A DNA stretch of 64,000 bases, from the IMG/VR virus record IMGVR_UViG_3300032236_002285, positions 248,001 through 312,000 of that record; one strand, given 5' to 3'. Below the pieces are notes generated by a model, which searched no databases, had not been told where the DNA came from, and saw only the letters and a program-made list of their open reading frames with translations. A program made the translations under genes and the position numbers. Positions within the stretch are counted from its first letter, which is position 1. Every line of letters begins with the position of its first letter. This document shows positions 7,698 to 38,775 of this stretch, piece after piece.

Positions 7698-7769
7698 GGG
7701 GTGGTAGCTTAATGGTGAAGCAATCGGCTGTTAACCGATAGATTATAGGTTCGAATCCTATCCACCCCG
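7698..7769 (+). tRNA. tRNA-Asn(GTT)
   Basis: GGGGTGG/CCACCCC acceptor; ATCGG-CTGTTAA-CCGAT; TTCGAAT T-loop. Confidence 0.9.
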
Positions 7770-7780
7770 CAAAAATAAAC

Positions 7781-7865
7781 TGGTAGGTACCCGAGCGGTC
7801 TTCAGGGACTAGTCTGATATACTAGGTGAGAAATCACGACGTGGGTTCAAATCCCACCCTACCAA
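7781..7865 (+). tRNA. tRNA-Ile(GAT) with long variable arm
   Basis: TGGTAGG/CCTACCA; CTAGT-CTGATAT-ACTAG; variable hairpin GTGA-GAAA-TCAC. Confidence 0.8.
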
Positions 7866-7871
7866 CAACAT

Positions 7872-7943
7872 TCACTGGTAGCTCAGAGGCAGAGCAACCG
7901 CCTGTTAAGCGGTAGGTCGGGATATCGTAATTCACCCAGTGAG
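7872..7943 (+). tRNA. tRNA-Asn(GTT), irregular T-arm
   Basis: TCACTGG/CCAGTGA, G73; CCGC-CTGTTAA-GCGG; T-stem poorly paired. Confidence 0.75.
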
Positions 7944-7949
7944 CAAAAC

Positions 7950-8028
7950 GCCTCAGTAGCCGAGGTCGCCTTCTAAGCGACTAATCGTAACGGAACTGAA
8001 AATGTAGGTTCGAATCCTACCTGGGGTA
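7950..8028 (+). tRNA. atypical tRNA-Arg(TCT): D-arm nearly absent, long variable region
   Basis: GCCTCAG/CTGGGGT; GTCGC-CTTCTAA-GCGAC; GTAGG-TTCGAAT-CCTAC. Confidence 0.65.
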
Positions 8029-8083
8029 CAAAAAAAAGGGACACTAGTCTTATTAATATATAAGTAAAATGTAGGTTTGTATT

Positions 8084-8914
8084 ATGTTAGACTTTGAAAA
8101 TATTCAAAAAGACTTTGAAAGTGGTCTTTTTTATCAAAAAGATATACTAATTAAGTATAGTATATCAATTAAAAAATTAAGAACTTTTGTAAAAAAAGGT
8201 TTATTGAATAAAGAAAATTGGAAATTAAAAAAATATGAAGTAAAAAGAGAAACAAAAAAGTTAATATCAGAAGGTAGAAAAAAATGGTTGAAAGAAAATA
8301 CATCTAAACATCCTTGGAGAAATGGAAATAAATCTAAGCCTTGTGAGGAGTTTAAGAAATTCTTAAAAAGTAGGAATATTTTCTTTTTGGAAGAGGTTAT
8401 GATTTCAAAAGAAAGATTCTATTCGGTTGATATTTTAATACCTGAGTTCACTTCGGTTGTAGAAATTAATGGTAATCAACATTATAAATCTAATGGAGAA
8501 CTTAAAGATTACTATAGTGAAAGAAATAGTTTTATAAAAAATAAAGGATGGTCGATATATGAAGTACACTACTCAATTGTTTATAATTTAGAAATGTGTG
8601 ATTCTATTTTAGAAAATATTAAAAATAATAATAAAATCGATATACCATTTTATATAAAAAATAAGAAAGAAAAAAAATATAAGAATAGGGAAGAGTACTG
8701 GAATAAAAGAAAAATTAATAAATTGAATAGTTATAGTGAAAGATTAAATGAATTAAAAAACAGTAGTATAGATTTTAAAAAGATTGGATGGGTTAAACTA
8801 GCATCTGAGATATTAAAAGTTAAAAATGTAAATAAACTATTAAAAGAAATCGATCCAGAATTTTATAAAAATTGTTATAAAAGAAAACAAAATGCCGAGG
8901 TGGTGGAATGGTAG
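8084..8914 (+). CDS. DUF559/Vsr-like PD-(D/E)XK homing endonuclease inserted in tRNA array
   Basis: FYSVDILIP..VVEINGNQHY..RNSFI..GWSIYEVHY; Lys-rich; last 21 nt overlap tRNA-Leu. Confidence 0.7.
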   Translation: MLDFENIQKDFESGLFYQKDILIKYSISIKKLRTFVKKGLLNKENWKLKKYEVKRETKKLISEGRKKWLKENTSKHPWRNGNKSKPCEEFKKFLKSRNIFFLEEVMISKERFYSVDILIPEFTSVVEINGNQHYKSNGELKDYYSERNSFIKNKGWSIYEVHYSIVYNLEMCDSILENIKNNNKIDIPFYIKNKKEKKYKNREEYWNKRKINKLNSYSERLNELKNSSIDFKKIGWVKLASEILKVKNVNKLLKEIDPEFYKNCYKRKQNAEVVEW

Positions 8915-8976
8915 ACACGCTAGCCTTAGAAGCTAGTACCCGCAAGGGTGTGTGGGTTCGAGTCCCACCCTCGGTA
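8894..8976 (+). tRNA. tRNA-Leu(TAG)
   Basis: GCCGAGG/CCTCGGT; CTAGC-CTTAGAA-GCTAG; type II variable arm. Confidence 0.9.
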
Positions 8977-9001
8977 CTGAAGTGAAACGAAAGTTCACTA
9001 C
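8977..9001 (+). repeat. 25-nt tRNA-Leu 3' trailer, copy 1
   Basis: CTGAAGTGAAACGAAAGTTCACTAC, identical to 9810-9834; GAAA-capped hairpin. Confidence 0.9.
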
Positions 9002-9010
9002 AAAAAAAAT

Positions 9011-9096
9011 TGATAGGTTGCCGTAGTGGCCGAACGGTCCGGACTGTTAATCCGGTGACGAATAGTCCATCGTGGGTTCGAATCCCACCCTGTCAG
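9011..9096 (+). tRNA. tRNA-Asn(GTT) with long variable region
   Basis: TGATAGG/CCTGTCA, G73; CCGGA-CTGTTAA-TCCGG. Confidence 0.8.
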
Positions 9097-9103
9097 CAAA
9101 TAT

Positions 9104-9175
9104 AGTCCTGTAGCTTAATGGGAAAGCGCTTGCCTTACATGCAAGAGAGAGTCGGATCGTTACCGACCAGGACTA
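9104..9175 (+). tRNA. tRNA-Val(TAC)
   Basis: AGTCCTG/CAGGACT; CTTGC-CTTACAT-GCAAG; T-loop ATCGTTA. Confidence 0.85.
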
Positions 9176-9181
9176 CAAAAT

Positions 9182-9255
9182 TGGACTGTAGCTCATTTGG
9201 TTAGAGCGCCACGCTGATACCGTGGAGGTGGTCGGATCGTAACCGACCAGTCCAA
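9182..9255 (+). tRNA. tRNA-Ile(GAT)
   Basis: TGGACTG/CAGTCCA; CCACG-CTGATAC-CGTGG; T-loop ATCGTAA. Confidence 0.85.
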
Positions 9256-9261
9256 CAACAA

Positions 9262-9345
9262 GGTACTATGGCCGAGTGGAGTCTTTAAGACGGGAGGCAG
9301 TGGTCTGCAAAACTTCTCACACTGGTTCGAATCCAGTTAGTACCT
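9262..9345 (+). tRNA. tRNA-Cys(GCA) with expanded D-loop
   Basis: GGTACTA/TAGTACC, U73; loop CTGCAAA; extra GTCT-TTA-AGAC hairpin in the D-loop. Confidence 0.75.
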
Positions 9346-9350
9346 CAAAC

Positions 9351-9422
9351 GCTTCTTAAGCATTAATGGTGATGCACTAGTCTTGTAAACTAGAGAAATC
9401 GGATCGTTACCGGTAAGAAGCT
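9351..9422 (+). tRNA. tRNA-Thr(TGT)
   Basis: GCTTCTT/AAGAAGC; CTAGT-CTTGTAA-ACTAG. Confidence 0.85.
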
Positions 9423-9428
9423 CTAAAT

Positions 9429-9500
9429 TGTTCTGTAGCTCAATGGTAGAGCGCTTCTGTGACATGGAAGAGGTAGTCGGATCGTTACCGACCAGGACAA
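9429..9500 (+). tRNA. tRNA-Val(GAC)
   Basis: TGTTCTG/CAGGACA; CTTCT-GTGACAT-GGAAG. Confidence 0.8.
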
Positions 9501-9525
9501 CAAAATAATGGATGGTGATTAAGAG

Positions 9526-9598
9526 TGTTACTTCGTGAAATGGTATACACATTTGTCTTAAAAACAAACTTTTGAGGGTTCAAGTCCCTCAGTAAAAT
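9526..9598 (+). tRNA. degenerate tRNA-Leu(TAA)-like element lacking the variable arm
   Basis: Leu-type D-arm GTGAAATGGTATACAC; TTTGT-CTTAAAA-ACAAA; GAGGG-TTCAAGT-CCCTC; acceptor stem has a mismatch. Confidence 0.55.
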
Positions 9599-9625
9599 CA
9601 CTCTTTGAACTTTCCTCCATTATAT

Positions 9626-9709
9626 GCCGATGTGGCTCAGTGGCGACAGCACTGGTTTTGTAAACCAGAGACGAATAGTCCAACGGGGGTTCGAGTCCCT
9701 CCATCGGCT
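9626..9709 (+). tRNA. tRNA-Thr(TGT) with long variable region
   Basis: GCCGATG/CATCGGC; CTGGT-TTTGTAA-ACCAG. Confidence 0.85.
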
Positions 9710-9724
9710 CAAAATAAATCACCT

Positions 9725-9809
9725 GCCTGGGTGGTGGAACGGTAGACACGCTGGACTTAAAATCCAGTGGGCAGTAATGCCCGTGAGGGTTCGAGTCCCT
9801 CTCCAGGTA
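9725..9809 (+). tRNA. tRNA-Leu(TAA)
   Basis: GCCTGGG/TCCAGGT; CTGGA-CTTAAAA-TCCAG; type II arm. Confidence 0.9.
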
Positions 9810-9834
9810 CTGAAGTGAAACGAAAGTTCACTAC
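9810..9834 (+). repeat. 25-nt tRNA-Leu 3' trailer, copy 2
   Basis: Identical to 8977-9001. Confidence 0.9.
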
Positions 9835-9840
9835 TAAATT

Positions 9841-9911
9841 ATTGGGATAGTTTAATGGTAAATCGTGGGCCTGATATGCCCGTGTTCTTGGTTCGATTCC
9901 AGGTCTCAATA
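9841..9911 (+). tRNA. tRNA-Ile(GAT)
   Basis: ATTGGGA/TCTCAAT; TGGGC-CTGATAT-GCCCG. Confidence 0.8.
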
Positions 9912-9916
9912 CAAAC

Positions 9917-9988
9917 TTCGATATGGCCTATTGGTAGGGTGCAGGGGGACATGTTCCTGAGGACTTGGTTCGATTCCAGGTATCGATA
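9917..9988 (+). tRNA. tRNA-like element, anticodon undetermined (8-nt loop GGACATGT)
   Basis: Acceptor, D- and T-arms present (CTTGG-TTCGATT-CCAGG); non-canonical anticodon loop. Confidence 0.5.
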
Positions 9989-9995
9989 CAAACAT

Positions 9996-10082
9996 CGCGG
10001 GGTAGAGTAGAGGTCAAACTCACTGGGCTCATAACCCAGGGTTGCGCAAGTGACACGTCAGGTTCGAATCCTGCCCCCGCTA
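9996..10082 (+). tRNA. initiator-type tRNA-Met(CAT) with long variable arm
   Basis: Unpaired C1:U72; three consecutive G-C pairs in CTGGG-CTCATAA-CCCAG; extra GTTGC-GCAA-GTGAC hairpin. Confidence 0.8.
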
Positions 10083-10088
10083 CAACAA

Positions 10089-10161
10089 GCAGTCATCGTA
10101 TAGTAGGTGATTACACCACCTTGGTACGGTGGAGATTCCGGTTCGAATCCGGGTGATTGCT
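10089..10161 (+). tRNA. tRNA-Thr(GGT)
   Basis: GCAGTCA/TGATTGC; CCACC-TTGGTAC-GGTGG. Confidence 0.85.
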
Positions 10162-10166
10162 CAAAT

Positions 10167-10247
10167 GCCCAGATGGTGGAATGGTATACACGCCAGTCTA
10201 AGAAGCTGGTTCCTTCGGGATTGAGAGTTCGAGTCTCTCTCTGGGCA
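10167..10247 (+). tRNA. tRNA-Leu(AAG)
   Basis: GCCCAGA/TCTGGGC; CCAGT-CTAAGAA-GCTGG; Leu-type D-arm and variable arm. Confidence 0.85.
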
Positions 10248-10255
10248 CAACATAC

Positions 10256-10340
10256 GCCGGTGTGATCCGATGTGGTAATGGAGTTCGGCTCATATCCGAA
10301 TTGGTTTATCCTATTGCTGGTTCGACTCCAGCCACCGGTA
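10256..10340 (+). tRNA. tRNA-CAT (elongator Met or lysidine Ile2), long variable region
   Basis: GCCGGTG/CACCGGT; TTCGG-CTCATAT-CCGAA. Confidence 0.75.
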
Positions 10341-10345
10341 CAAAT

Positions 10346-10426
10346 GTCAGAATGGTGGAATGGTATACACGCTAGTTTCAAAAACTAGTGCCGAAAGGTA
10401 TGAGAGTTCAAATCTCTCTTCTGATA
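10346..10426 (+). tRNA. tRNA-Leu(CAA)
   Basis: GTCAGAA/TTCTGAT; CTAGT-TTCAAAA-ACTAG. Confidence 0.88.
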
Positions 10427-10448
10427 CTCGATAAAATAAAAAATAAAA

Positions 10449-14834: not shown

Positions 14835-14866
14835 TAAATTTATATTAAAAAATAATATATATGGAC

Positions 14867-16486
14867 ATGAAATACATTAAAACTAGAAATAGATTTCTTG
14901 CTGAATCAAAAGGTGAAATGAGCGACAACGCTCTTCATACACTTGCGACTCATGATGATGGACAATCTCCTGATGTTCAAAAAAGTTTGGATGCACTTGA
15001 CGAGGTTTCTCCTAAAGGTAAAGTGGTAACTCGTTTTGCTCCTTCACCAACAGGATTTTTACATATCGGAGGTGTTCGTACAGCTCTTTACAACTACTTG
15101 TTTGCTAAAAAACACGGTGGTATCTTTTATGTTCGTATTGAAGATACTGACCAAAAACGTTTTGTAGGCGATGCTGAAAAATATATTCAAGACGCTTTAG
15201 AATGGTGTGGTATTGACCCAGATTATGCACCTTGGAAAGGTGGTCCTAATGGACCTTACCGCCAATCGGAAAGAGATTATTCTGGTCATATTCAAACTCT
15301 TTTAGATAAGGGTATGGCTTACTATGCTTTTGATACAGAAGATGATATGGTTAAAGTAAGAGCTGAAAATGCTCACTTTGCTTACGATACTAAAACTCGT
15401 ATGTCAATGAAGAACTCACTCTCTTTATCTAAAGAAGAAGTTGATGCACTTCTTGCTGCTAATACTCCATTTGTAATTCGCTTCAAAACACCAGAAAATA
15501 GAACTATCACCGTTAATGATGTAATTCGTGGTGAAGTTAGTTTGAATACAAATCAAACTGATGATAAAGTTTTGGTTAAATCAAATGGTATTCCTACATA
15601 TCATATGGCTAACGTATGTGACGACCACGATATGGGAACTACTCACGTTATTCGTGGTGAAGAATGGTTGCCTTCAACTCCACTTCACTTAATGTTATAT
15701 GAAGCATTTGGTTGGGAAGCTCCTACATTTGCTCACCTACCTCTAATTTTGAATCCTGATGGTAAAGGTAAGTTGTCTAAACGTAAAGCTTTAGCTTTAG
15801 GTATTCCAGCTTTCCCAATGGGTGGTGAAGGTGAAGATGATAAAGGTCAAAAAGTAAAGTATCTTGGTTTCAAAGATGAAGGTTTTGAACCACAAGCTAT
15901 GTTGAATTTCTTGGTGCTTTTAGGTTGGTCCCCAACAGATACTCAAGAACTTATGACTATGGCTGACATGATTTCTAAATTTGACTTAGCTCATGTTCAT
16001 AAGGCTGGTGCTCGTTTTGATGTTGAAAAAGCTAAACACTTTAATGCTCAACACTTGAACACTTATAGAAGTGATGAAGAAATTCTTTCACATATTGATA
16101 TGGGTGATACCTATCATTACTCACCAGAAAATCTTTCTAAGATTGTGGATATCTGTAAAAAGAGAGCAGTCTTTACTAAAGATTTACAAGCTGTTGCTGA
16201 TATCTTCTTTAAGCCAATTGTGATTAAAGAAACAGATGTTAAGTTATTAACTGATGATTACAAAAAAGTATTCTCAGTTTTTGTAACTAAGTCAATTGAT
16301 TGGACGGCTGAAACTATTAAACAAACAATTCACGACATTTGTCAAGAAATAGGTGTTAAAATGGGTAAGATAATGCCTGCTTTAAGATTGGCTATTGCTG
16401 GTGGATTACCAGGTCCAGATTTGGCAACAACAATGGAAATAATTGGTAGGGATGAAACCTTAATAAGAATTAAAAACACTTTATAA
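14867..16486 (+). CDS. gltX: glutamyl-tRNA synthetase with ~50-aa N-terminal extension carrying the capsid-targeting-like tag
   Basis: VVTRFAPSPTGFLHIGG, RIEDTD, HVIRGEEW, KLSKRK; starts MKYIKTRNRFLAES 5 nt after TAATATATA (14853-14861). Confidence 0.92.
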   Translation: MKYIKTRNRFLAESKGEMSDNALHTLATHDDGQSPDVQKSLDALDEVSPKGKVVTRFAPSPTGFLHIGGVRTALYNYLFAKKHGGIFYVRIEDTDQKRFVGDAEKYIQDALEWCGIDPDYAPWKGGPNGPYRQSERDYSGHIQTLLDKGMAYYAFDTEDDMVKVRAENAHFAYDTKTRMSMKNSLSLSKEEVDALLAANTPFVIRFKTPENRTITVNDVIRGEVSLNTNQTDDKVLVKSNGIPTYHMANVCDDHDMGTTHVIRGEEWLPSTPLHLMLYEAFGWEAPTFAHLPLILNPDGKGKLSKRKALALGIPAFPMGGEGEDDKGQKVKYLGFKDEGFEPQAMLNFLVLLGWSPTDTQELMTMADMISKFDLAHVHKAGARFDVEKAKHFNAQHLNTYRSDEEILSHIDMGDTYHYSPENLSKIVDICKKRAVFTKDLQAVADIFFKPIVIKETDVKLLTDDYKKVFSVFVTKSIDWTAETIKQTIHDICQEIGVKMGKIMPALRLAIAGGLPGPDLATTMEIIGRDETLIRIKNTL

Positions 16487-23257: not shown

Positions 23258-23329
23258 AGTCCGTGGGTATGTTGGTATGAATAACCTCCTGTCACGGGGA
23301 AGAAGCCGGTTCGATTCCGGTACGGACTG
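23258..23329 (+). tRNA. tRNA-Asp(GTC)
   Basis: AGTCCGT/ACGGACT, G73; loop CTGTCAC. Confidence 0.85.
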
Positions 23330-23334
23330 CAAAA

Positions 23335-23408
23335 CGAGAAGTGACTAAGGTTTTAAGCACGCGCCGTCTGGAGCGGTGAGTTAGCAGGTTCGATTCCTGT
23401 CTTCTCGA
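23335..23408 (+). tRNA. tRNA-Pro(TGG)-like with atypical anticodon loop
   Basis: C1:G72 and A73 (CGAGAAG/CTTCTCG-A); CGCCG-TCTGGAG-CGGTG has C33 and A37. Confidence 0.6.
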
Positions 23409-23471
23409 CAACAAGTAGCTTTTGAGGCGAAAAATACTCTTTAGAGAATAGAGTAAAACAATTCTCAAAAT

Positions 23472-23544
23472 GGTCTCGTGGTTGAATGGTTACAATACCA
23501 CCCTGTCACGGTGCGAGATGCCGGTTCGATTCCGGTCGAGACCG
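23472..23544 (+). tRNA. tRNA-Asp(GTC)
   Basis: GGTCTCG/CGAGACC, G73; loop CTGTCAC. Confidence 0.9.
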
Positions 23545-23549
23545 CAAAA

Positions 23550-23620
23550 GGACATATAGCTTAAAAGGAAAGAGTACCTCCAGTGGGAGGGGAGTCTTGG
23601 TTCAAGTCCAGGTATGTCCG
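23550..23620 (+). tRNA. tRNA-like element, anticodon undetermined (shortened loop)
   Basis: GGACATA/TATGTCC, G73; D- and T-arms intact; CCTCC-AGTG-GGAGG. Confidence 0.5.
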
Positions 23621-23626
23621 CAAAAA

Positions 23627-23698
23627 GGTCTATTAGGGTAGTGGTTATCCTTCCCGACTGTCTATCGGGAGACACCGGTTCGAATCCGGTATAGACCG
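23627..23698 (+). tRNA. tRNA-Asp(GTC)
   Basis: GGTCTAT/ATAGACC; CCCGA-CTGTCTA-TCGGG. Confidence 0.88.
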
Positions 23699-23745
23699 CA
23701 AATGGGCTTTTCAAGACAAAAAGTTTGTAGATTACTTAATGAAAC

Positions 23746-23820
23746 GGTCTAGTGGTGAAGTGGCTATCATATCTGCCTGTCACGCAGAAGTAGAGGGATC
23801 GAAACCCTTCTAGACCGCCA
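23746..23820 (+). tRNA. tRNA-Asp(GTC), CCA encoded
   Basis: GGTCTAG/CTAGACC-GCCA; TCTGC-CTGTCAC-GCAGA. Confidence 0.9.
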
Positions 23821-23826
23821 AAAATT

Positions 23827-23901
23827 CGGGGTGTAGCGTAGTCCGGTTATCGCGCATGCTTTGGGAGCATGAAATCGTAGGTTCGAATCCTGCCACCCCG
23901 A
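23827..23901 (+). tRNA. tRNA-Pro(TGG)
   Basis: CGGGGTG/CACCCCG-A; CATGC-TTTGGGA-GCATG. Confidence 0.92.
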
Positions 23902-23932
23902 CAAAGAAACAAAATATTAATAAATAGAAATT

Positions 23933-23986
23933 ATGAGAACAACAACACAATACCAGCAACAACAACAAATTAATCCAACGGATTGA
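23933..23986 (+). CDS. attenuator leader peptide 3, MRTTTQYQQQQQINPTD
   Basis: Six Gln codons (CAA x5, CAG x1) in 17; TGA lies inside segment 2 of a 1:2/2:3/3:4 hairpin set. Confidence 0.85.
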   Translation: MRTTTQYQQQQQINPTD

Positions 23987-24014
23987 TAACGGTATCGTAT
24001 TGTCTAAACTTTAC

Positions 24015-24048
24015 AAACCCTATTCAATCTGATTGAGTAGGGTTTTTT
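24015..24048 (+). terminator. attenuator terminator upstream of tRNA-Gln x3 and glnS
   Basis: AAACCCTATTCAA-tctga-TTGAGTAGGGTTT plus T-run, ending 2 nt before tRNA-Gln. Confidence 0.88.
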
Positions 24049-24050
24049 AT

Positions 24051-24121
24051 TGTCTGATGGTGTAGTGGTAGCACAAGGGTCTTTGATCCCCTTAGTTCAG
24101 GTCCGATTCCTGATCAGACAA
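24051..24121 (+). tRNA. tRNA-Gln(TTG)
   Basis: TGTCTGA/TCAGACA; loop CTTTGAT; T-loop TCCGATT. Confidence 0.8.
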
Positions 24122-24128
24122 CAAATAT

Positions 24129-24210
24129 TGAGGAATAGAATAATGGCAGTTCACCCGCCTTTGAAGCGGAGAGAGAAATCTCAGTGTAGGTTCGAGTCCT
24201 ACTTCCTCAA
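24129..24210 (+). tRNA. tRNA-Gln(TTG) with long variable arm
   Basis: TGAGGAA/TTCCTCA; CCGC-CTTTGAA-GCGG; GAGA-GAAA-TCTC arm. Confidence 0.82.
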
Positions 24211-24216
24211 CAAAAT

Positions 24217-24288
24217 TGCTTTATAGTATATGGGTTAACATATCTGTCTTTGAAACAGATGAACTTGGTTCGAGTCCAAGTGGAGCAA
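24217..24288 (+). tRNA. tRNA-Gln(TTG)
   Basis: TGCTTTA/TGGAGCA; TCTGT-CTTTGAA-ACAGA. Confidence 0.85.
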
Positions 24289-24306
24289 CAAAAAATAATA
24301 ACTACT

Positions 24307-25911
24307 ATGAATTTCATTGAAGAAAAAATAATTGAAAAAGGTAATCTTGATAAACTAACATTGAGATTTCCACCAGAACCAAATGGCTATTTACATATTG
24401 GTCACGCTAAATCCATTATCTTAAATTTTGGTTTAGCTGAAAAATATAATAGACCTTGTAACTTGAGATTTGATGATACTAACCCAACTACCGAAGATAC
24501 TCACTTTGTTGAGTCAATTATAAAAGATATAGAATGGTTAGGTTACAAACCCGCCAATATTTTCTATACATCTGATTATTTTGATTTTCTTTATGAATGT
24601 GCTATTACTTTAATTAAAAAAGGATTAGCTTATGTTGATGATTCAACATCAGAAGAAATTGCTAACTTAAAAGGAACACCAACTTCACCTGGTAAAGATT
24701 CACCTTATAAGTCAAGAAGTGTTGATGAAAATTTAGACCTATTTAATAGAATGAGATTAGGTGAATTTGTAGAAGGTTCTAAAATTCTTAGAGCTAATAT
24801 TGATATGACTTCTCCTAATATGATTTTAAGAGATCCAGTTCTTTATAGAATAATATCTAAGTCACACCACAGAACTGGTGATACTTGGAAGATTTATCCA
24901 ATGTATGACTTTGCTCATCCACTTTCAGATTATAAAGAAGGTATTACCGATTCTTTATGTACTTTAGAATTTGAAGTTCACAGACCTTTATATATGTGGG
25001 TTTTAGAAAATTGTGATTTAGAAAATCCGCTTCCAGAAGAAACTGAGTTTGCTCGTTTGAACATTGACTATACGGTTATGTCAAAGAGAAAATTAAAAAG
25101 ATTAGTTGAAGAAGGATTTGTAGATGGTTGGGATGATCCAAGAATGCCAACTATTTCTGGTTTAAGAAGAAGAGGTTTTACTCCAAATGCTATTAAAGAT
25201 TTTTGTGATAGAATTTCTGTTACAAGAAAAGATGGTATTGTTTCTTATTTACTTTTAGAAGAATGTTTAAGAACTGATTTGAACATAGTTACCAATAGAT
25301 TAATGGGTGTTATGGATCCAGTTAAGTTAGTTATTACTAATTGGGATAGCGGAACTGAAATGGTTGAAGTTGAAAATAATCCTGGTGATGAAAGTGCTGG
25401 TACAAGAATGATTCCTTTTAGTGGTGAACTATTTATTGAAAGAGAAGATTTCAGAGAAGAAGCTAATAATAAATTTCATAGATTGAAATTAGGTGGTGAA
25501 GTAAGATTAAAAGGCGCTTATGTTATTATGGCTAACGAAGTTATCAAAGATGAATTTGGAGAAATCACTGAGATTAGATGTACTTACGATCCTTTAACAA
25601 GATCAGGTATGTCTATTGAAAGAAAGATTAAAGGAACTATTCACTGGGTATCTGCTGAACACGGAGTTAGAATGAATGTAAATGAATATGATAGATTATT
25701 TAATGATGGATCACCAGATAAAAATGAAGATGATTTTATCAATTATATCAACCCAGATTCACTTATAATTAATGATAAGGCAATCTTTGAACCTCACGTT
25801 TTAAACGTCAAGGAACCAGTTCAAATGATGAGAAAAGGGTATTATATTTTAGATACTGATGGTAAAAGTTTCAATAAAACGGTAAGTTTAAAAGAAGGTT
25901 GGGTAGGTTAA
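24307..25911 (+). CDS. glnS: glutaminyl-tRNA synthetase
   Basis: RFPPEPNGYLHIGHAKS, RFDDTNP, IYPMYDFAH, SLCTLEF, VMSKRKL, GWDDPRMPTISGLRRRG; start moved to ATG 24307 (ORF-track start lies inside a tRNA). Confidence 0.95.
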   Translation: MNFIEEKIIEKGNLDKLTLRFPPEPNGYLHIGHAKSIILNFGLAEKYNRPCNLRFDDTNPTTEDTHFVESIIKDIEWLGYKPANIFYTSDYFDFLYECAITLIKKGLAYVDDSTSEEIANLKGTPTSPGKDSPYKSRSVDENLDLFNRMRLGEFVEGSKILRANIDMTSPNMILRDPVLYRIISKSHHRTGDTWKIYPMYDFAHPLSDYKEGITDSLCTLEFEVHRPLYMWVLENCDLENPLPEETEFARLNIDYTVMSKRKLKRLVEEGFVDGWDDPRMPTISGLRRRGFTPNAIKDFCDRISVTRKDGIVSYLLLEECLRTDLNIVTNRLMGVMDPVKLVITNWDSGTEMVEVENNPGDESAGTRMIPFSGELFIEREDFREEANNKFHRLKLGGEVRLKGAYVIMANEVIKDEFGEITEIRCTYDPLTRSGMSIERKIKGTIHWVSAEHGVRMNVNEYDRLFNDGSPDKNEDDFINYINPDSLIINDKAIFEPHVLNVKEPVQMMRKGYYILDTDGKSFNKTVSLKEGWVG

Positions 25912-34196: not shown

Positions 34197-34214
34197 AAAA
34201 TTGTTGTATCTTTG
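34184..34214 (+). promoter_or_regulatory. Bacteroidota sigma70-type promoter
   Basis: TTTG (34184) - 19 nt - TATCTTTG (34207-34214). Confidence 0.7.
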
Positions 34215-34249
34215 TGTAACAAAAAGAGAACACAATGATTAAATAATAA

Positions 34250-34354
34250 ATGAAAACAATTTTCGTAATTAAATTATTTGTAATTCTAGGAATTACAAGT
34301 ATGGGTCCGAAAAACTATTCTTACTCTATAACATTGGCGACACGGTGCCGATAA
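34250..34354 (+). CDS. small ORF, 34 aa with hydrophobic N-terminus
   Basis: MKTIFVIKLFVILGITSMGPKNYSYSITLATRCR, first ORF after the promoter. Confidence 0.35.
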   Translation: MKTIFVIKLFVILGITSMGPKNYSYSITLATRCR

Positions 34355-34456
34355 TGGAAGAAAAACAAATTAGAGTGGATATTTATCCAAATTCTAAAAA
34401 GTGATAAAAATTTGCGGTTTTTTACAACTTTTGAAAATCGTAAAGTATAACATAAA

Positions 34457-34605
34457 GAGTTTTCGTAGTGGTTAACTCTTAATTCCTCCAACTGAGGGGT
34501 CTGTTTTTACAGGGTGGGTACTAAACCCCACGCAAAGTTTTCGTAGTGGTTAACTTACCTCTGAACAGAGGGGTCTGTTTTTACAGGGTGGATACCTAAC
34601 TCCAC
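34457..34605 (+). ncRNA. tandem pair of ~73-nt four-hairpin structured RNA repeats
   Basis: Copies 34457-34531 and 34535-34605; invariant TTCGTAGTGGTT loop and GAGGGGTCTGTTTTTACAGGGTGG core; compensatory stem changes. Confidence 0.65.
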
Positions 34606-34620
34606 ACTAAAATTAATTCT

Positions 34621-34731
34621 ATGAATGACACGGAAATGTATGCTTTAATAGCAACTCCTGTTATATTGTTTGGTTCAATAGCAATCGCAGTGTATAAGGA
34701 AAAGAGAGCCAAGAGAAAGAAAGGCGTTTAA
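34621..34731 (+). CDS. small single-pass membrane peptide (36 aa)
   Basis: MNDTEMYALIATPVILFGSIAIAVYKEKRAKRKKGV, followed by terminator at 34730-34757. Confidence 0.55.
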   Translation: MNDTEMYALIATPVILFGSIAIAVYKEKRAKRKKGV

Positions 34732-34791
34732 TCCCATCTAAGATGGGATTTTTTTTGTAAAACTTTTTAATAATTTTTAATATTAACATTA

Positions 34792-35241
34792 ATGGATTTA
34801 CTAACATCAGAAATAGATATTTTACTTCTTATATTACCTAGAATTTTAGTAGCCACAATATGTGGATTTCTTGTAGGTTGGGATAGAGAAAAGAAAAAGA
34901 AAGTAGCCGGTTTAAGAACAATGGTTCTTATTAGCGTTGGTACTTGTATATTTGTTTTATCAGCTCTTGTTTGTTCAAAAATGTATAATATATCAGACCC
35001 ATCCAGAATTATATCAACTATTATAACTGGTATAGGATTTTTAGGTGCTGGTGTTATTATGAAACATGATGATAAAATTGTTGGTGTAACAACCGCTTCT
35101 TTTATATGGGTAATCGCGGGTATAGGTATTATGGCTGGTCTTGGAATAATTATTATGCCAATTGTTTTGACTTTTGGACTTTTATTCATATCTTCGTATT
35201 TCGAAAAATTAGAAAAGTACATACAAAGAAAAAATCAATAG
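34792..35241 (+). CDS. MgtC/SapB family membrane protein
   Basis: GFLVGWDRE..AGLRTMVLISVG..DPSRIISTIITGIGFLGAGVI..GVTTAS. Confidence 0.9.
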   Translation: MDLLTSEIDILLLILPRILVATICGFLVGWDREKKKKVAGLRTMVLISVGTCIFVLSALVCSKMYNISDPSRIISTIITGIGFLGAGVIMKHDDKIVGVTTASFIWVIAGIGIMAGLGIIIMPIVLTFGLLFISSYFEKLEKYIQRKNQ

Positions 35242-35730
35242 ATGAAATTAGAAATCGAACGCAAATTTCTATTGAAGGCTATGCCTGATATAGATCCTAC
35301 CGAGGTTGTTAAAATTGACCAATACTATTTTAAAAATTCAAAAGGTGTTTGGGAACGAGCTCGATCATGGGAGTCTAATAAGAATGGTAAAAAATATATT
35401 CACACGGTTAAAAAAAGCATTTCTAAAGGTGTAAACCTTGAAGATGAAAAAGCATTAACTGATGTTGAGTTTGTTGATTTTAAAAATAAGTGTTTATCAA
35501 AAACACTTGAGTCTAAATTCATTTCCAAAGAAAGATGGATTTATCCAGATGGTAAACTTTATTGGGAAGTTGATATTTTTAATAGTGGTCACCATTTAAT
35601 TGTAGCAGAGATTGAAATACCTACAAAAAGCTATAAATTGACTATTCCGGATTTTATTAAAGATAAAATGCTGTTAGAAGTAACAGGATTAAAACAATTC
35701 AGTAATAGAAACCTTTCTAATAAAATCTAA
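35242..35730 (+). CDS. CYTH-domain (triphosphate tunnel metalloenzyme) protein
   Basis: LEIERKFL, KERWIY, WEVDIF, VAEIE. Confidence 0.85.
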   Translation: MKLEIERKFLLKAMPDIDPTEVVKIDQYYFKNSKGVWERARSWESNKNGKKYIHTVKKSISKGVNLEDEKALTDVEFVDFKNKCLSKTLESKFISKERWIYPDGKLYWEVDIFNSGHHLIVAEIEIPTKSYKLTIPDFIKDKMLLEVTGLKQFSNRNLSNKI

Positions 35731-35740
35731 TATAAAAAAC

Positions 35741-36274
35741 ATGAGTAATAAATTAGAATTAAGAATGTATGGTCTTGTACCATATAATATTTCACCAATT
35801 CAACAAGCTATCCAATTTGGACACGCTGTTGTTGAGTATGGTCAAAAAATGAAATACTTAGGTGAACATAAGCAGTCACTGAATACTCAGTACAATGATT
35901 GGGCTGATAACTGGAAAACATTTATCATCTTAAATGGTGGTACGACAAATCATAAAACTTCCTTAGAAAATGGATTACCATTTGGTAGTCTGAATAACCA
36001 CTTACTTACTTTATCTGAAAATGATGTTGAGCTTGCTCATTTTAGTGAGCCAGATTTGGGTGACCAATTAACTGCGGTTGTTTTCATTGTTGATGAAAGA
36101 GTATTTAATAAAAAGAAATATCCGGATTTTGGATTTGACTATGATGAAATAAATGAATGCTTTGTTAGAAATACTAATTTTGGTCTAAAGCCAGACTCTG
36201 CTTGGAAAGAAAGTATAGGTGGTGCTAAAAATGTCTTCCTAAGAGACTTTTTGAAAAACTTTAGATTAGCTTAA
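35741..36274 (+). CDS. peptidyl-tRNA hydrolase 2 (PTH2)-like protein
   Basis: AIQFGHAV, KTFIILNGG, FSEPDLGDQLTAV. Confidence 0.6.
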   Translation: MSNKLELRMYGLVPYNISPIQQAIQFGHAVVEYGQKMKYLGEHKQSLNTQYNDWADNWKTFIILNGGTTNHKTSLENGLPFGSLNNHLLTLSENDVELAHFSEPDLGDQLTAVVFIVDERVFNKKKYPDFGFDYDEINECFVRNTNFGLKPDSAWKESIGGAKNVFLRDFLKNFRLA

Positions 36275-36276
36275 CT

Positions 36277-36624
36277 ATGGCTGAAAGTTGGATAAAGATT
36301 AATGATGAAATATTTTACACTAAAGATATATCAATTCAATTAAGTATTGGATCACATGCTTCTTTATCATTGACATTTGATATTAATAAATATCCAAGCT
36401 ATTCAAATATATTTTTTACTAAATATGATGGTCGTGAAAAATTTAATATTGTAGGTAAAGATTTTGAAGCAAAAGGAACTATAATTAAAACAATTGATAT
36501 TGATAAAAGTACAATGATTGTATCTGTTAGATGTGATTTGCTTAATCATAAAGATATTTCAGAAAGAAGAGAAGAAATTCTTGATAAAGTACTAAACAAC
36601 CCTGAAAATAATAATATAAAATAA
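36277..36624 (+). CDS. hypothetical protein with RREEILDKVL motif
   Basis: Operon position; shared C-terminal motif. Confidence 0.55.
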   Translation: MAESWIKINDEIFYTKDISIQLSIGSHASLSLTFDINKYPSYSNIFFTKYDGREKFNIVGKDFEAKGTIIKTIDIDKSTMIVSVRCDLLNHKDISERREEILDKVLNNPENNNIK

Positions 36625-36642
36625 ACAAGTAAAATTTAAAAT

Positions 36643-38775
<2,133 letters not shown>

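Follow-up and report, generated by a model that had tools for sequence, protein, structure and literature searches.

A new four-hairpin RNA in the genomes of jumbo phages

Two tandem units of about 75 nt in a jumbo phage genome are members of a strongly covarying small RNA family which, as far as Rfam 15 and the searchable literature show, is undescribed. The family is found at one locus per genome in huge freshwater phages, usually wedged between tRNA-like genes just behind the GOLLD RNA, and so looks like a stand-alone RNA gene rather than a riboswitch for the peptide gene that happens to lie next to it in the genome where it was first seen. We identified 71 distinct instances in 68 distinct loci of IMG/VR and metagenome contigs, plus one in the published 634.8-kb huge phage LR745206.1, whereas an exact-word scan of 185,579 bacterial and archaeal genomes yielded no true instance. 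The starting point was a 64,000-nucleotide stretch (hereafter the window) of the 476,236-bp virus record IMGVR_UViG_3300032236_002285, a genome that we refer to as G000; relatives are labelled L for individual loci and G or W for the other phage sequences compared. The features of the window relevant here are as follows.

34407..34451 (+), conserved block of ~45 nt immediately 5' of the array, promoter-like by inference only
34456..34534 (+), motif copy 1 (type A, with a 7-bp P1 and a UAAU linker): P1 34455-34461/34474-34480, invariant loop 34462-34473, P2 34485-34488/34494-34497, P3 34501-34504/34509-34512, P4 34514-34518/34527-34531
34534..34608 (+), motif copy 2 (type B, with a 5-bp P1): P1 34535-34539/34552-34556, loop 34540-34551, P2 34558-34562/34567-34571, P3 34575-34578/34583-34586, P4 34588-34592/34601-34605
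34621..34731 (+), gene for a 36-aa single-pass membrane peptide, co-transcribed behind the array in this lineage only
34730..34758 (+), intrinsic terminator (9-bp stem followed by a T-run) ending the motif-plus-peptide transcript
34792..35241 (+), MgtC-family membrane protein gene, a syntenic neighbour and not part of the RNA
35242..35730 (+), CYTH/triphosphate-tunnel enzyme gene, a syntenic neighbour and not part of the RNA

The original prediction described two copies of a four-hairpin RNA with compensatory differences, and this observation was confirmed: every stem that it listed is present. In copy 1, P1 is GAGTT/AACTC (extendable to 7 bp), P2 is CCTC/GAGG, P3 is CTGT-TTTT-ACAG and P4 is GTGGG/CCCAC; in copy 2, P1 is AAGTT/AACTT, P2 is CCTCT/AGAGG, P3 is the same and P4 is GTGGA/TCCAC. 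P1 encloses the 12-nt loop TTCGTAGTGGTT in both copies. The copies are 74% identical and their differences at P1 and P4 (G-C against A-U in each case) are compensatory. RNAfold returned exactly these eight hairpins on the + strand (-50.4 kcal/mol, z = -2.37), while the - strand folded less well (z = -1.34). The two long invariant blocks occur nowhere else in the window, and a covariance model (R1, described below) found only these two copies in the whole of G000, with scores of 77.7 bits (E = 2.8e-13) for copy 1 and 90.8 bits (E = 7.9e-17) for copy 2. A weak R1 hit at 34256-34321 (+) (11.6 bits, E = 1), starting AATTTTCGTAAT about 135 nt upstream of the array, is either chance or a decayed third copy. 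The ATG of the 36-aa ORF is at 34621, 15 nt after P4, as predicted. The "host-type promoter" that was placed upstream was not confirmed as stated, since a sigma-70 scan found nothing directly upstream of the array. Instead, the ~45-nt block is shared by at least eight related loci, preceding the array in L008, L055, L057, L125 and L133 and a tRNA-Met plus motif array in L139, and it therefore looks like a phage-specific promoter-like element, although promoter function is unproven.

Since the window alone gives only modest statistics, the case rests on relatives. An exact scan for the 17-nt P1 word found 15 IMG/VR loci, 14 of them true, 99 metagenome stretches, and 27 stretches in the 185,579 prokaryote genomes. 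All 27 of the latter, and about a third of the metagenome stretches, lack the rest of the motif and are chance or coding matches. Seventy distinct instances were aligned, RNAalifold returned the four predicted helices from this alignment, and the covariance model R1 was built from it. Re-searching the loci with R1 gave 100 hits, 71 of them distinct. In the alignment of these 71, 98.7% of helix cells form standard pairs and 12 of 18 pairs show changes on both sides (156 cells); none of 500 shuffles reached any of the five measures used, and sliding the 3' partners reduced pairing to 34-62%. G-U/U-G cells number 33 against 3 for A-C/C-A, which indicates that selection acts on the RNA of the + strand and not on DNA. 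The conserved unpaired positions are the whole P1 loop, the junction GUC before P3 and the P4 loop UAC(C/U)..AA, while P2-P4 otherwise drift.

An 18-nt stretch covering the P1 loop is identical in 69 of the 71 distinct instances, and the other two carry a single A-to-G change that turns a U-A pair of P1 into U-G. Because most instances were first seeded with the exact 17-mer, divergent loop variants could have been missed outside the loci examined, but the invariance of the loop is not an ascertainment artefact, as loci ascertained without the loop still have it. A scan seeded on P4 returned four loci, all with the exact loop. Eighty loci retrieved through the neighbouring CYTH protein, blind to the RNA, gave motif hits in 12 loci at E ≤ 1, again all with the exact loop. 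The CYTH proteins of motif-bearing loci are only 53-83% identical to that of the window, so the loop is far more conserved than its surroundings, which points to one specific, highly conserved partner. The invariant block ends in the 6-nt palindrome GUUAAC (GTTAAC, in the regions of 34474-34479 and 34552-34557), which straddles the border of the P1 loop and stem and could in principle mediate RNA-RNA dimerisation. Naturally truncated units also exist and could serve as natural deletion mutants: L110:1009-1069 lacks P2 entirely, and L065:3084-3147 and the third unit of L113 lack the P1 loop.

A match to a known Rfam family had been named beforehand as grounds for rejecting the prediction, and none was found. 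At the gathering threshold Rfam 15 gave only tRNAs in the window, and at E ≤ 10 the region 34200-34800 gave 11 sub-threshold hits (RatA, LhrC, rliD and others), all attributable to chance; the same was true of a relative. None of these hits was to a tRNA or to a known self-cleaving ribozyme (hammerhead, twister, twister-sister, pistol, hatchet, HDV, hairpin, VS or glmS). ARAGORN found 27 tRNAs in the window but no tRNA or tmRNA at this site. In L004 the flanking tRNA-like gene scores 41.6 bits as tRNA while the motif scores nothing. No GOLLD match was found in the window or in the whole of G000. Papers on GOLLD and ROOL mention tRNA neighbourhoods but no such downstream element.

We next examined the genomic context of the 68 distinct loci. 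Forty-eight have one copy of the motif, 16 have two and 4 have three. The 5' neighbour is the 3' end of a tRNA or tRNA-like gene in 34 loci, a ~50-nt acceptor-plus-T-arm minihelix directly behind GOLLD in 19, and only a promoter-like block in 15, such that a tRNA(-like) 3' end precedes the motif in 53 of 68. In some loci (L004:873-949, L006:851-925, L002, L054 and L056) the tRNA directly behind GOLLD is a tRNA-Glu paralogue with one extra U in the anticodon loop (CUUUUCAG), called "tRNA-???" with 4- or 2-nt anticodons by ARAGORN; in others it is reduced to the minihelix. The 3' neighbour is a ~105-125-nt tRNA-like gene beginning GGCCCGTTCGTCTA in 41 loci, an intrinsic terminator in about 13 and, only in the window's own lineage, a small ORF in about 9. 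The 3' tRNA-like gene (for example L016:7780-7905 (-), L003:5886-6010 and L004:1027-1150, with about 40 other loci) is a second undescribed RNA. It is Glu-like, with acceptor GGCCCGT/ACGGGCT and a normal T-arm, but two extra hairpins, one with a GNRA loop, are inserted in its D-loop and it has an aberrant UUUUC anticodon loop, the anticodon arm having a 4-nt UUUC loop or an 8-nt CUUUUCGG loop. It is not detected by Rfam or ARAGORN.

GOLLD was found by Rfam immediately upstream of the motif in 8 of the 14 IMG/VR loci, and an nhmmer profile of these GOLLDs found its 3' domain ending 55-112 nt before the first motif copy in about 50 of the loci examined (that is, 55-112 nt beyond model position 416), usually with a tRNA(-Glu/Met)-like gene between the two. 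The published 634,780-bp huge phage LR745206.1 has the order GOLLD, motif, CYTH. The five huge-phage genomes of more than 634 kb in that study were predicted to infect Bacteroidetes and cluster within the Mahaphage clade (PMC7162821), which fits the TAnnTTTG-type promoter boxes that we see before mgtC and CYTH in relatives. There is one motif locus per genome in five genomes of 262-436 kb and in G000. The element is nevertheless optional: a 508-kb relative has GOLLD and both tRNA-like genes, joined by a plain 17-nt spacer, and no motif; LR756502.1 shows no motif within the 5.5-kb locus examined around its GOLLD; and only 12 of about 30 close CYTH loci carry the motif.

The window has an exceptional version of this arrangement. 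G000 lacks GOLLD and both aberrant tRNA-like genes, with only a normal tRNA-Glu elsewhere, and only the window's lineage has lost GOLLD and placed a conserved 31-36-aa membrane peptide gene behind the array. This peptide exists in eight distinct conserved versions (core EIYAAIATPVVLL plus a basic tail), each followed by a terminator, and has a weak hit to phrog_22320. In the terminator scan, four terminator-like sites were found against 0.2 expected in shuffles, and equivalent terminators follow the non-coding RNA cluster in related loci. Intermediate architectures link the window's layout to the GOLLD layout by deletions: L049 has GOLLD, a tRNA-like gene, the motif and the peptide, and L091 has two motif copies, a stump of the second tRNA-like gene and the peptide. 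The type A and type B copies are orthologous across phages, with type A first copies in L008, L057, L133 and others, and the tandem state is therefore maintained and not a recent duplication. Downstream, a conserved gene string at 34792-38775 (+) comprises the MgtC-family protein (Pfam MgtC, E = 4.5e-33), the CYTH/triphosphate-tunnel enzyme, a 177-aa protein (phrog_3668 "hydrolase"), a 115-aa ORF and a 710-aa ClpB/ClpC-like double-AAA ATPase. MgtC and CYTH recur behind the cluster in dozens of relatives, the MgtC gene for instance in L004, L012, L016 and L162. The CYTH assignment rests on a weak Pfam hit over the full length and on a family profile that hits PDB 3TYP and 2FBL; this gene lies within ~1 kb downstream of the motif in 48 distinct versions.

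The interpretation offered in the original prediction, a new cis-regulatory tandem aptamer, ribozyme or protein-sponge RNA, was only partly supported. That the element is a selected RNA structure, arranged in tandem and absent from Rfam, holds; a cis-regulatory tandem aptamer for the downstream peptide gene is not supported; no known self-cleaving class matches, although a new ribozyme class cannot be excluded; and a protein sponge remains compatible with the invariant loop and multi-copy arrays and is close to the reading that we prefer. What could not be seen from the window is that the element belongs to the GOLLD/tRNA-like non-coding RNA cluster of huge phages.

What our analyses establish is a conserved, strand-specific, structured RNA gene of about 76 nt with four consecutive, unnested hairpins, occupying a single locus in a clade of 260-635-kb phages as 1-3 tandem copies, normally within a cluster ordered GOLLD, tRNA-like gene, motif, second tRNA-like gene and terminator. 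The mechanism, by contrast, is inferred from sequence alone, as are expression, processing and any binding, since all the runs found to hold the sequence are DNA runs. In the explanation that we tentatively favour, while regarding it as somewhat less likely than not, the RNA would be transcribed as part of a polycistronic tRNA-type precursor and set free as a stable ~75-80-nt molecule by the enzymes that trim the flanking tRNA(-like) genes. It would then act in trans, P2-P4 being a scaffold and the invariant P1 loop the recognition surface for one highly conserved partner, most likely a tRNA-binding protein or enzyme of the host or phage. In that case the RNA would be a possibly tRNA-derived mimic or decoy, whose dose is raised by the tandem copies.

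The relation to tRNA deserves careful wording. The motif lives in tRNA arrays, is of tRNA size, and has four arms in the order D-like, stem-loop, extra stem-loop and 5-bp stem with a loop starting U-A-C. The P1 loop is collinear with tRNA positions about 7-25 (UUCGU..AGUGGUUA..AC), the U8-to-D-arm segment of the neighbouring tRNA-Glu-like genes, and TTCGT-AGTGGTTA-AC matches the 5' part of the tRNA-like gene in L002 at 15 of 15 positions with two 2-nt gaps, which remove two D-stem pairs. The loop carries the D-loop signature (A14..G18 G19..A21): it contains UAGUGGUUAA, identical to the D-loop of the window's own tRNA-Asp. tRNA ancestry or mimicry is therefore plausible, but it rests on one short collinear match, and the RNA fails every other tRNA criterion. 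It has no acceptor stem, both flanks being A-rich (..AAAG and ACUAAA) and not complementary, with no covarying terminal helix in either alignment. The P2 loops are 4-6 nt and variable, so there is no 7-nt anticodon loop, and the P4 loop is 8 nt, UAC(C/U)N(A/N)A(C/A), with a variable fifth position and without the U54-A58 spacing of a canonical T-loop.

We also searched for a partner of the P1 loop. No complement of 11 nt or more was found in the 476-kb phage genome beyond the motif's own antisense and one isolated 11-mer, the 10-11-mer matches being no more than chance, and no 17-nt complement was found in conserved RNAs of the 185,579 genomes, searches which would not reveal short seeds in the host. 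Pairing with the 3' end of the upstream tRNA looked good for CCGCUAC and GACUAC ends but failed for CCUC, ACUC and CUUC ends, and was rejected. Pairing with GOLLD was also rejected: a 9-bp complement exists in four GOLLDs, but this only good complement lies inside GOLLD's own first helix and varies (CACUAC, CACGAC, CACAAC, CACUCC) while the loop is invariant. Nor is there a link to a phage GluRS, which is present in G000, G001, G003 and W01, and absent in G002, G004 and G005, which all have the motif, and is also present in motif-less G007 and W02.

Among the alternatives, the one that survives best, although we consider it unlikely, is a processing or punctuation element, a structured spacer that directs or insulates RNase P/Z/E cleavage of the flanking aberrant tRNA-like RNAs and GOLLD, or protects their ends, with no trans function of its own. 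The motif sits exactly between a tRNA(-like) 3' end and the 5' end of the next tRNA-like gene, with linkers of only 3-4 nt and 4-8 nt, and in L169 the same two tRNA-like genes are joined by a plain 17-nt spacer, so that the motif occupies a spacer position. However, a spacer would not need an invariant 18-nt block, the array persists with its own promoter-like block in genomes where GOLLD and both flanking tRNA-like genes are gone, and arrays of 2-3 copies sit back to back without tRNAs between them.

Less likely still is that the RNA is a partner, adaptor or cargo of the GOLLD nanocage, its invariant loop docking onto GOLLD or onto whatever GOLLD binds. The close linkage in about 50 loci, including LR745206.1, speaks for this, as does the finding that GOLLD forms a 14-mer cage with covalently linked tRNAs, proposed to be exposed when the cage opens (bioRxiv 10.1101/2024.12.08.627333). 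Against it, G000 has the motif but no GOLLD, G007 and the examined locus of LR756502.1 have GOLLD but no motif, and the loop complement in GOLLD varies as described above. The motif is, moreover, a separate element beyond the 3' end of the GOLLD model, about 76 nt against more than 400 nt, although both are found in the same phages and the same transcription-unit neighbourhood, share the tRNA association and have unknown functions.

A cis-regulatory leader (tandem aptamer, riboswitch or mRNA stabiliser) controlling the small membrane peptide and the downstream mgtC gene, the main idea of the original prediction, appears very unlikely. In the window and about 8 further distinct loci the array does end 15-20 nt before a conserved small ORF on the same transcript, and in the window P2 plus the U-rich P3 loop scores as terminator-like. 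However, about 54 of 68 loci have no ORF between the motif and the next tRNA-like gene or terminator, the terminator-like U-run is private to the window's P3 loop, no alternative (switching) pairing is conserved, and with 48 of 68 loci being single copy, tandem cooperativity is not a family feature. The family shows that a tandem structured RNA upstream of an ORF need not be a riboswitch.

A new self-cleaving ribozyme or other catalytic RNA that cuts the tandem or tRNA-linked precursor into units is also very unlikely. The conserved nucleotides are concentrated in unpaired regions, and units sit head to tail and next to RNAs that must be cut out, but the supported structure is four separate hairpins with no multi-helix junction or pseudoknot. 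The only extra covarying pair, J3/4 with the last P4-loop base (GC 47, UA 10), may be a lineage effect, since the UA cases are one lineage, and we make no claim for it. A decaying tRNA pseudogene or DNA-level repeat (recombination site, origin or mobile element) without RNA function, suggested by the D-loop-like sequence, tRNA neighbourhood and truncated copies, is strongly disfavoured by the compensatory changes in all four helices, the 33:3 excess of G-U over A-C, the single undispersed locus per genome and the retention of orthologous type A and type B copies. Some probability remains for an explanation that we have not considered.

The most far-reaching possibility compatible with the data, which we regard as unlikely, is that the motif is a new class of minimal, acceptor-less tRNA mimic that huge phages of Bacteroidota deploy in trans, either as a decoy that titrates a host tRNA-directed enzyme or defence nuclease, or as the adaptor that links cargo to the GOLLD nanocage. 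If so, it would give the first experimental handle on what the GOLLD/tRNA-like RNA module does. GOLLD is one of the largest and most ornate bacterial and phage RNAs, with a solved cage structure but unknown function, and a small, very well-defined RNA that travels with it and with two aberrant tRNA-like genes, and can also stand alone, offers a tractable 76-nt entry point for pull-downs, probing, deletion and co-assembly. It also adds a family missing from Rfam to the annotation of jumbo phage genomes.

Other systems offer partial parallels. The T4 species 1/2 RNAs (rnaC/rnaD) are small, stable, structured phage RNAs of unknown function embedded in a tRNA operon and released by tRNA processing, but they are 120-140 nt, end in tRNA-like acceptor structures and are not known to be related to the motif in sequence or structure. 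The E. coli 3'ETS-leuZ sponge is likewise cut out of the spacer or trailer of a tRNA precursor and acts in trans by binding other molecules, but it is unstructured apart from its terminator and works by base pairing with sRNAs, whereas no pairing target was found for the motif in the searches above. Multi-copy tandem sRNA families such as LhrC1-5 and Qrr share an invariant single-stranded loop while their stems drift; the weak LhrC hit (17 bits against a gathering score of 110) is chance, and the motif has no Rho-independent terminator within each unit and no known target.

The phage encodes its own glutamate-tRNA ligase at 14861-16486 (+) (TIGR00464, 436 bits) and glutamine-tRNA ligase at 24250-25911 (+) (TIGR00440, 668 bits), the latter right after three tRNA-Gln genes. 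Two dense tRNA arrays at 7698-10427 and 23258-24289 (+) hold 27-29 genes, several of which are odd, namely "tRNA-???" genes with anticodons acat and gt, and Ile, Asn, Thr and Met genes of 84-87 nt, lengths normally seen only in class II tRNAs.
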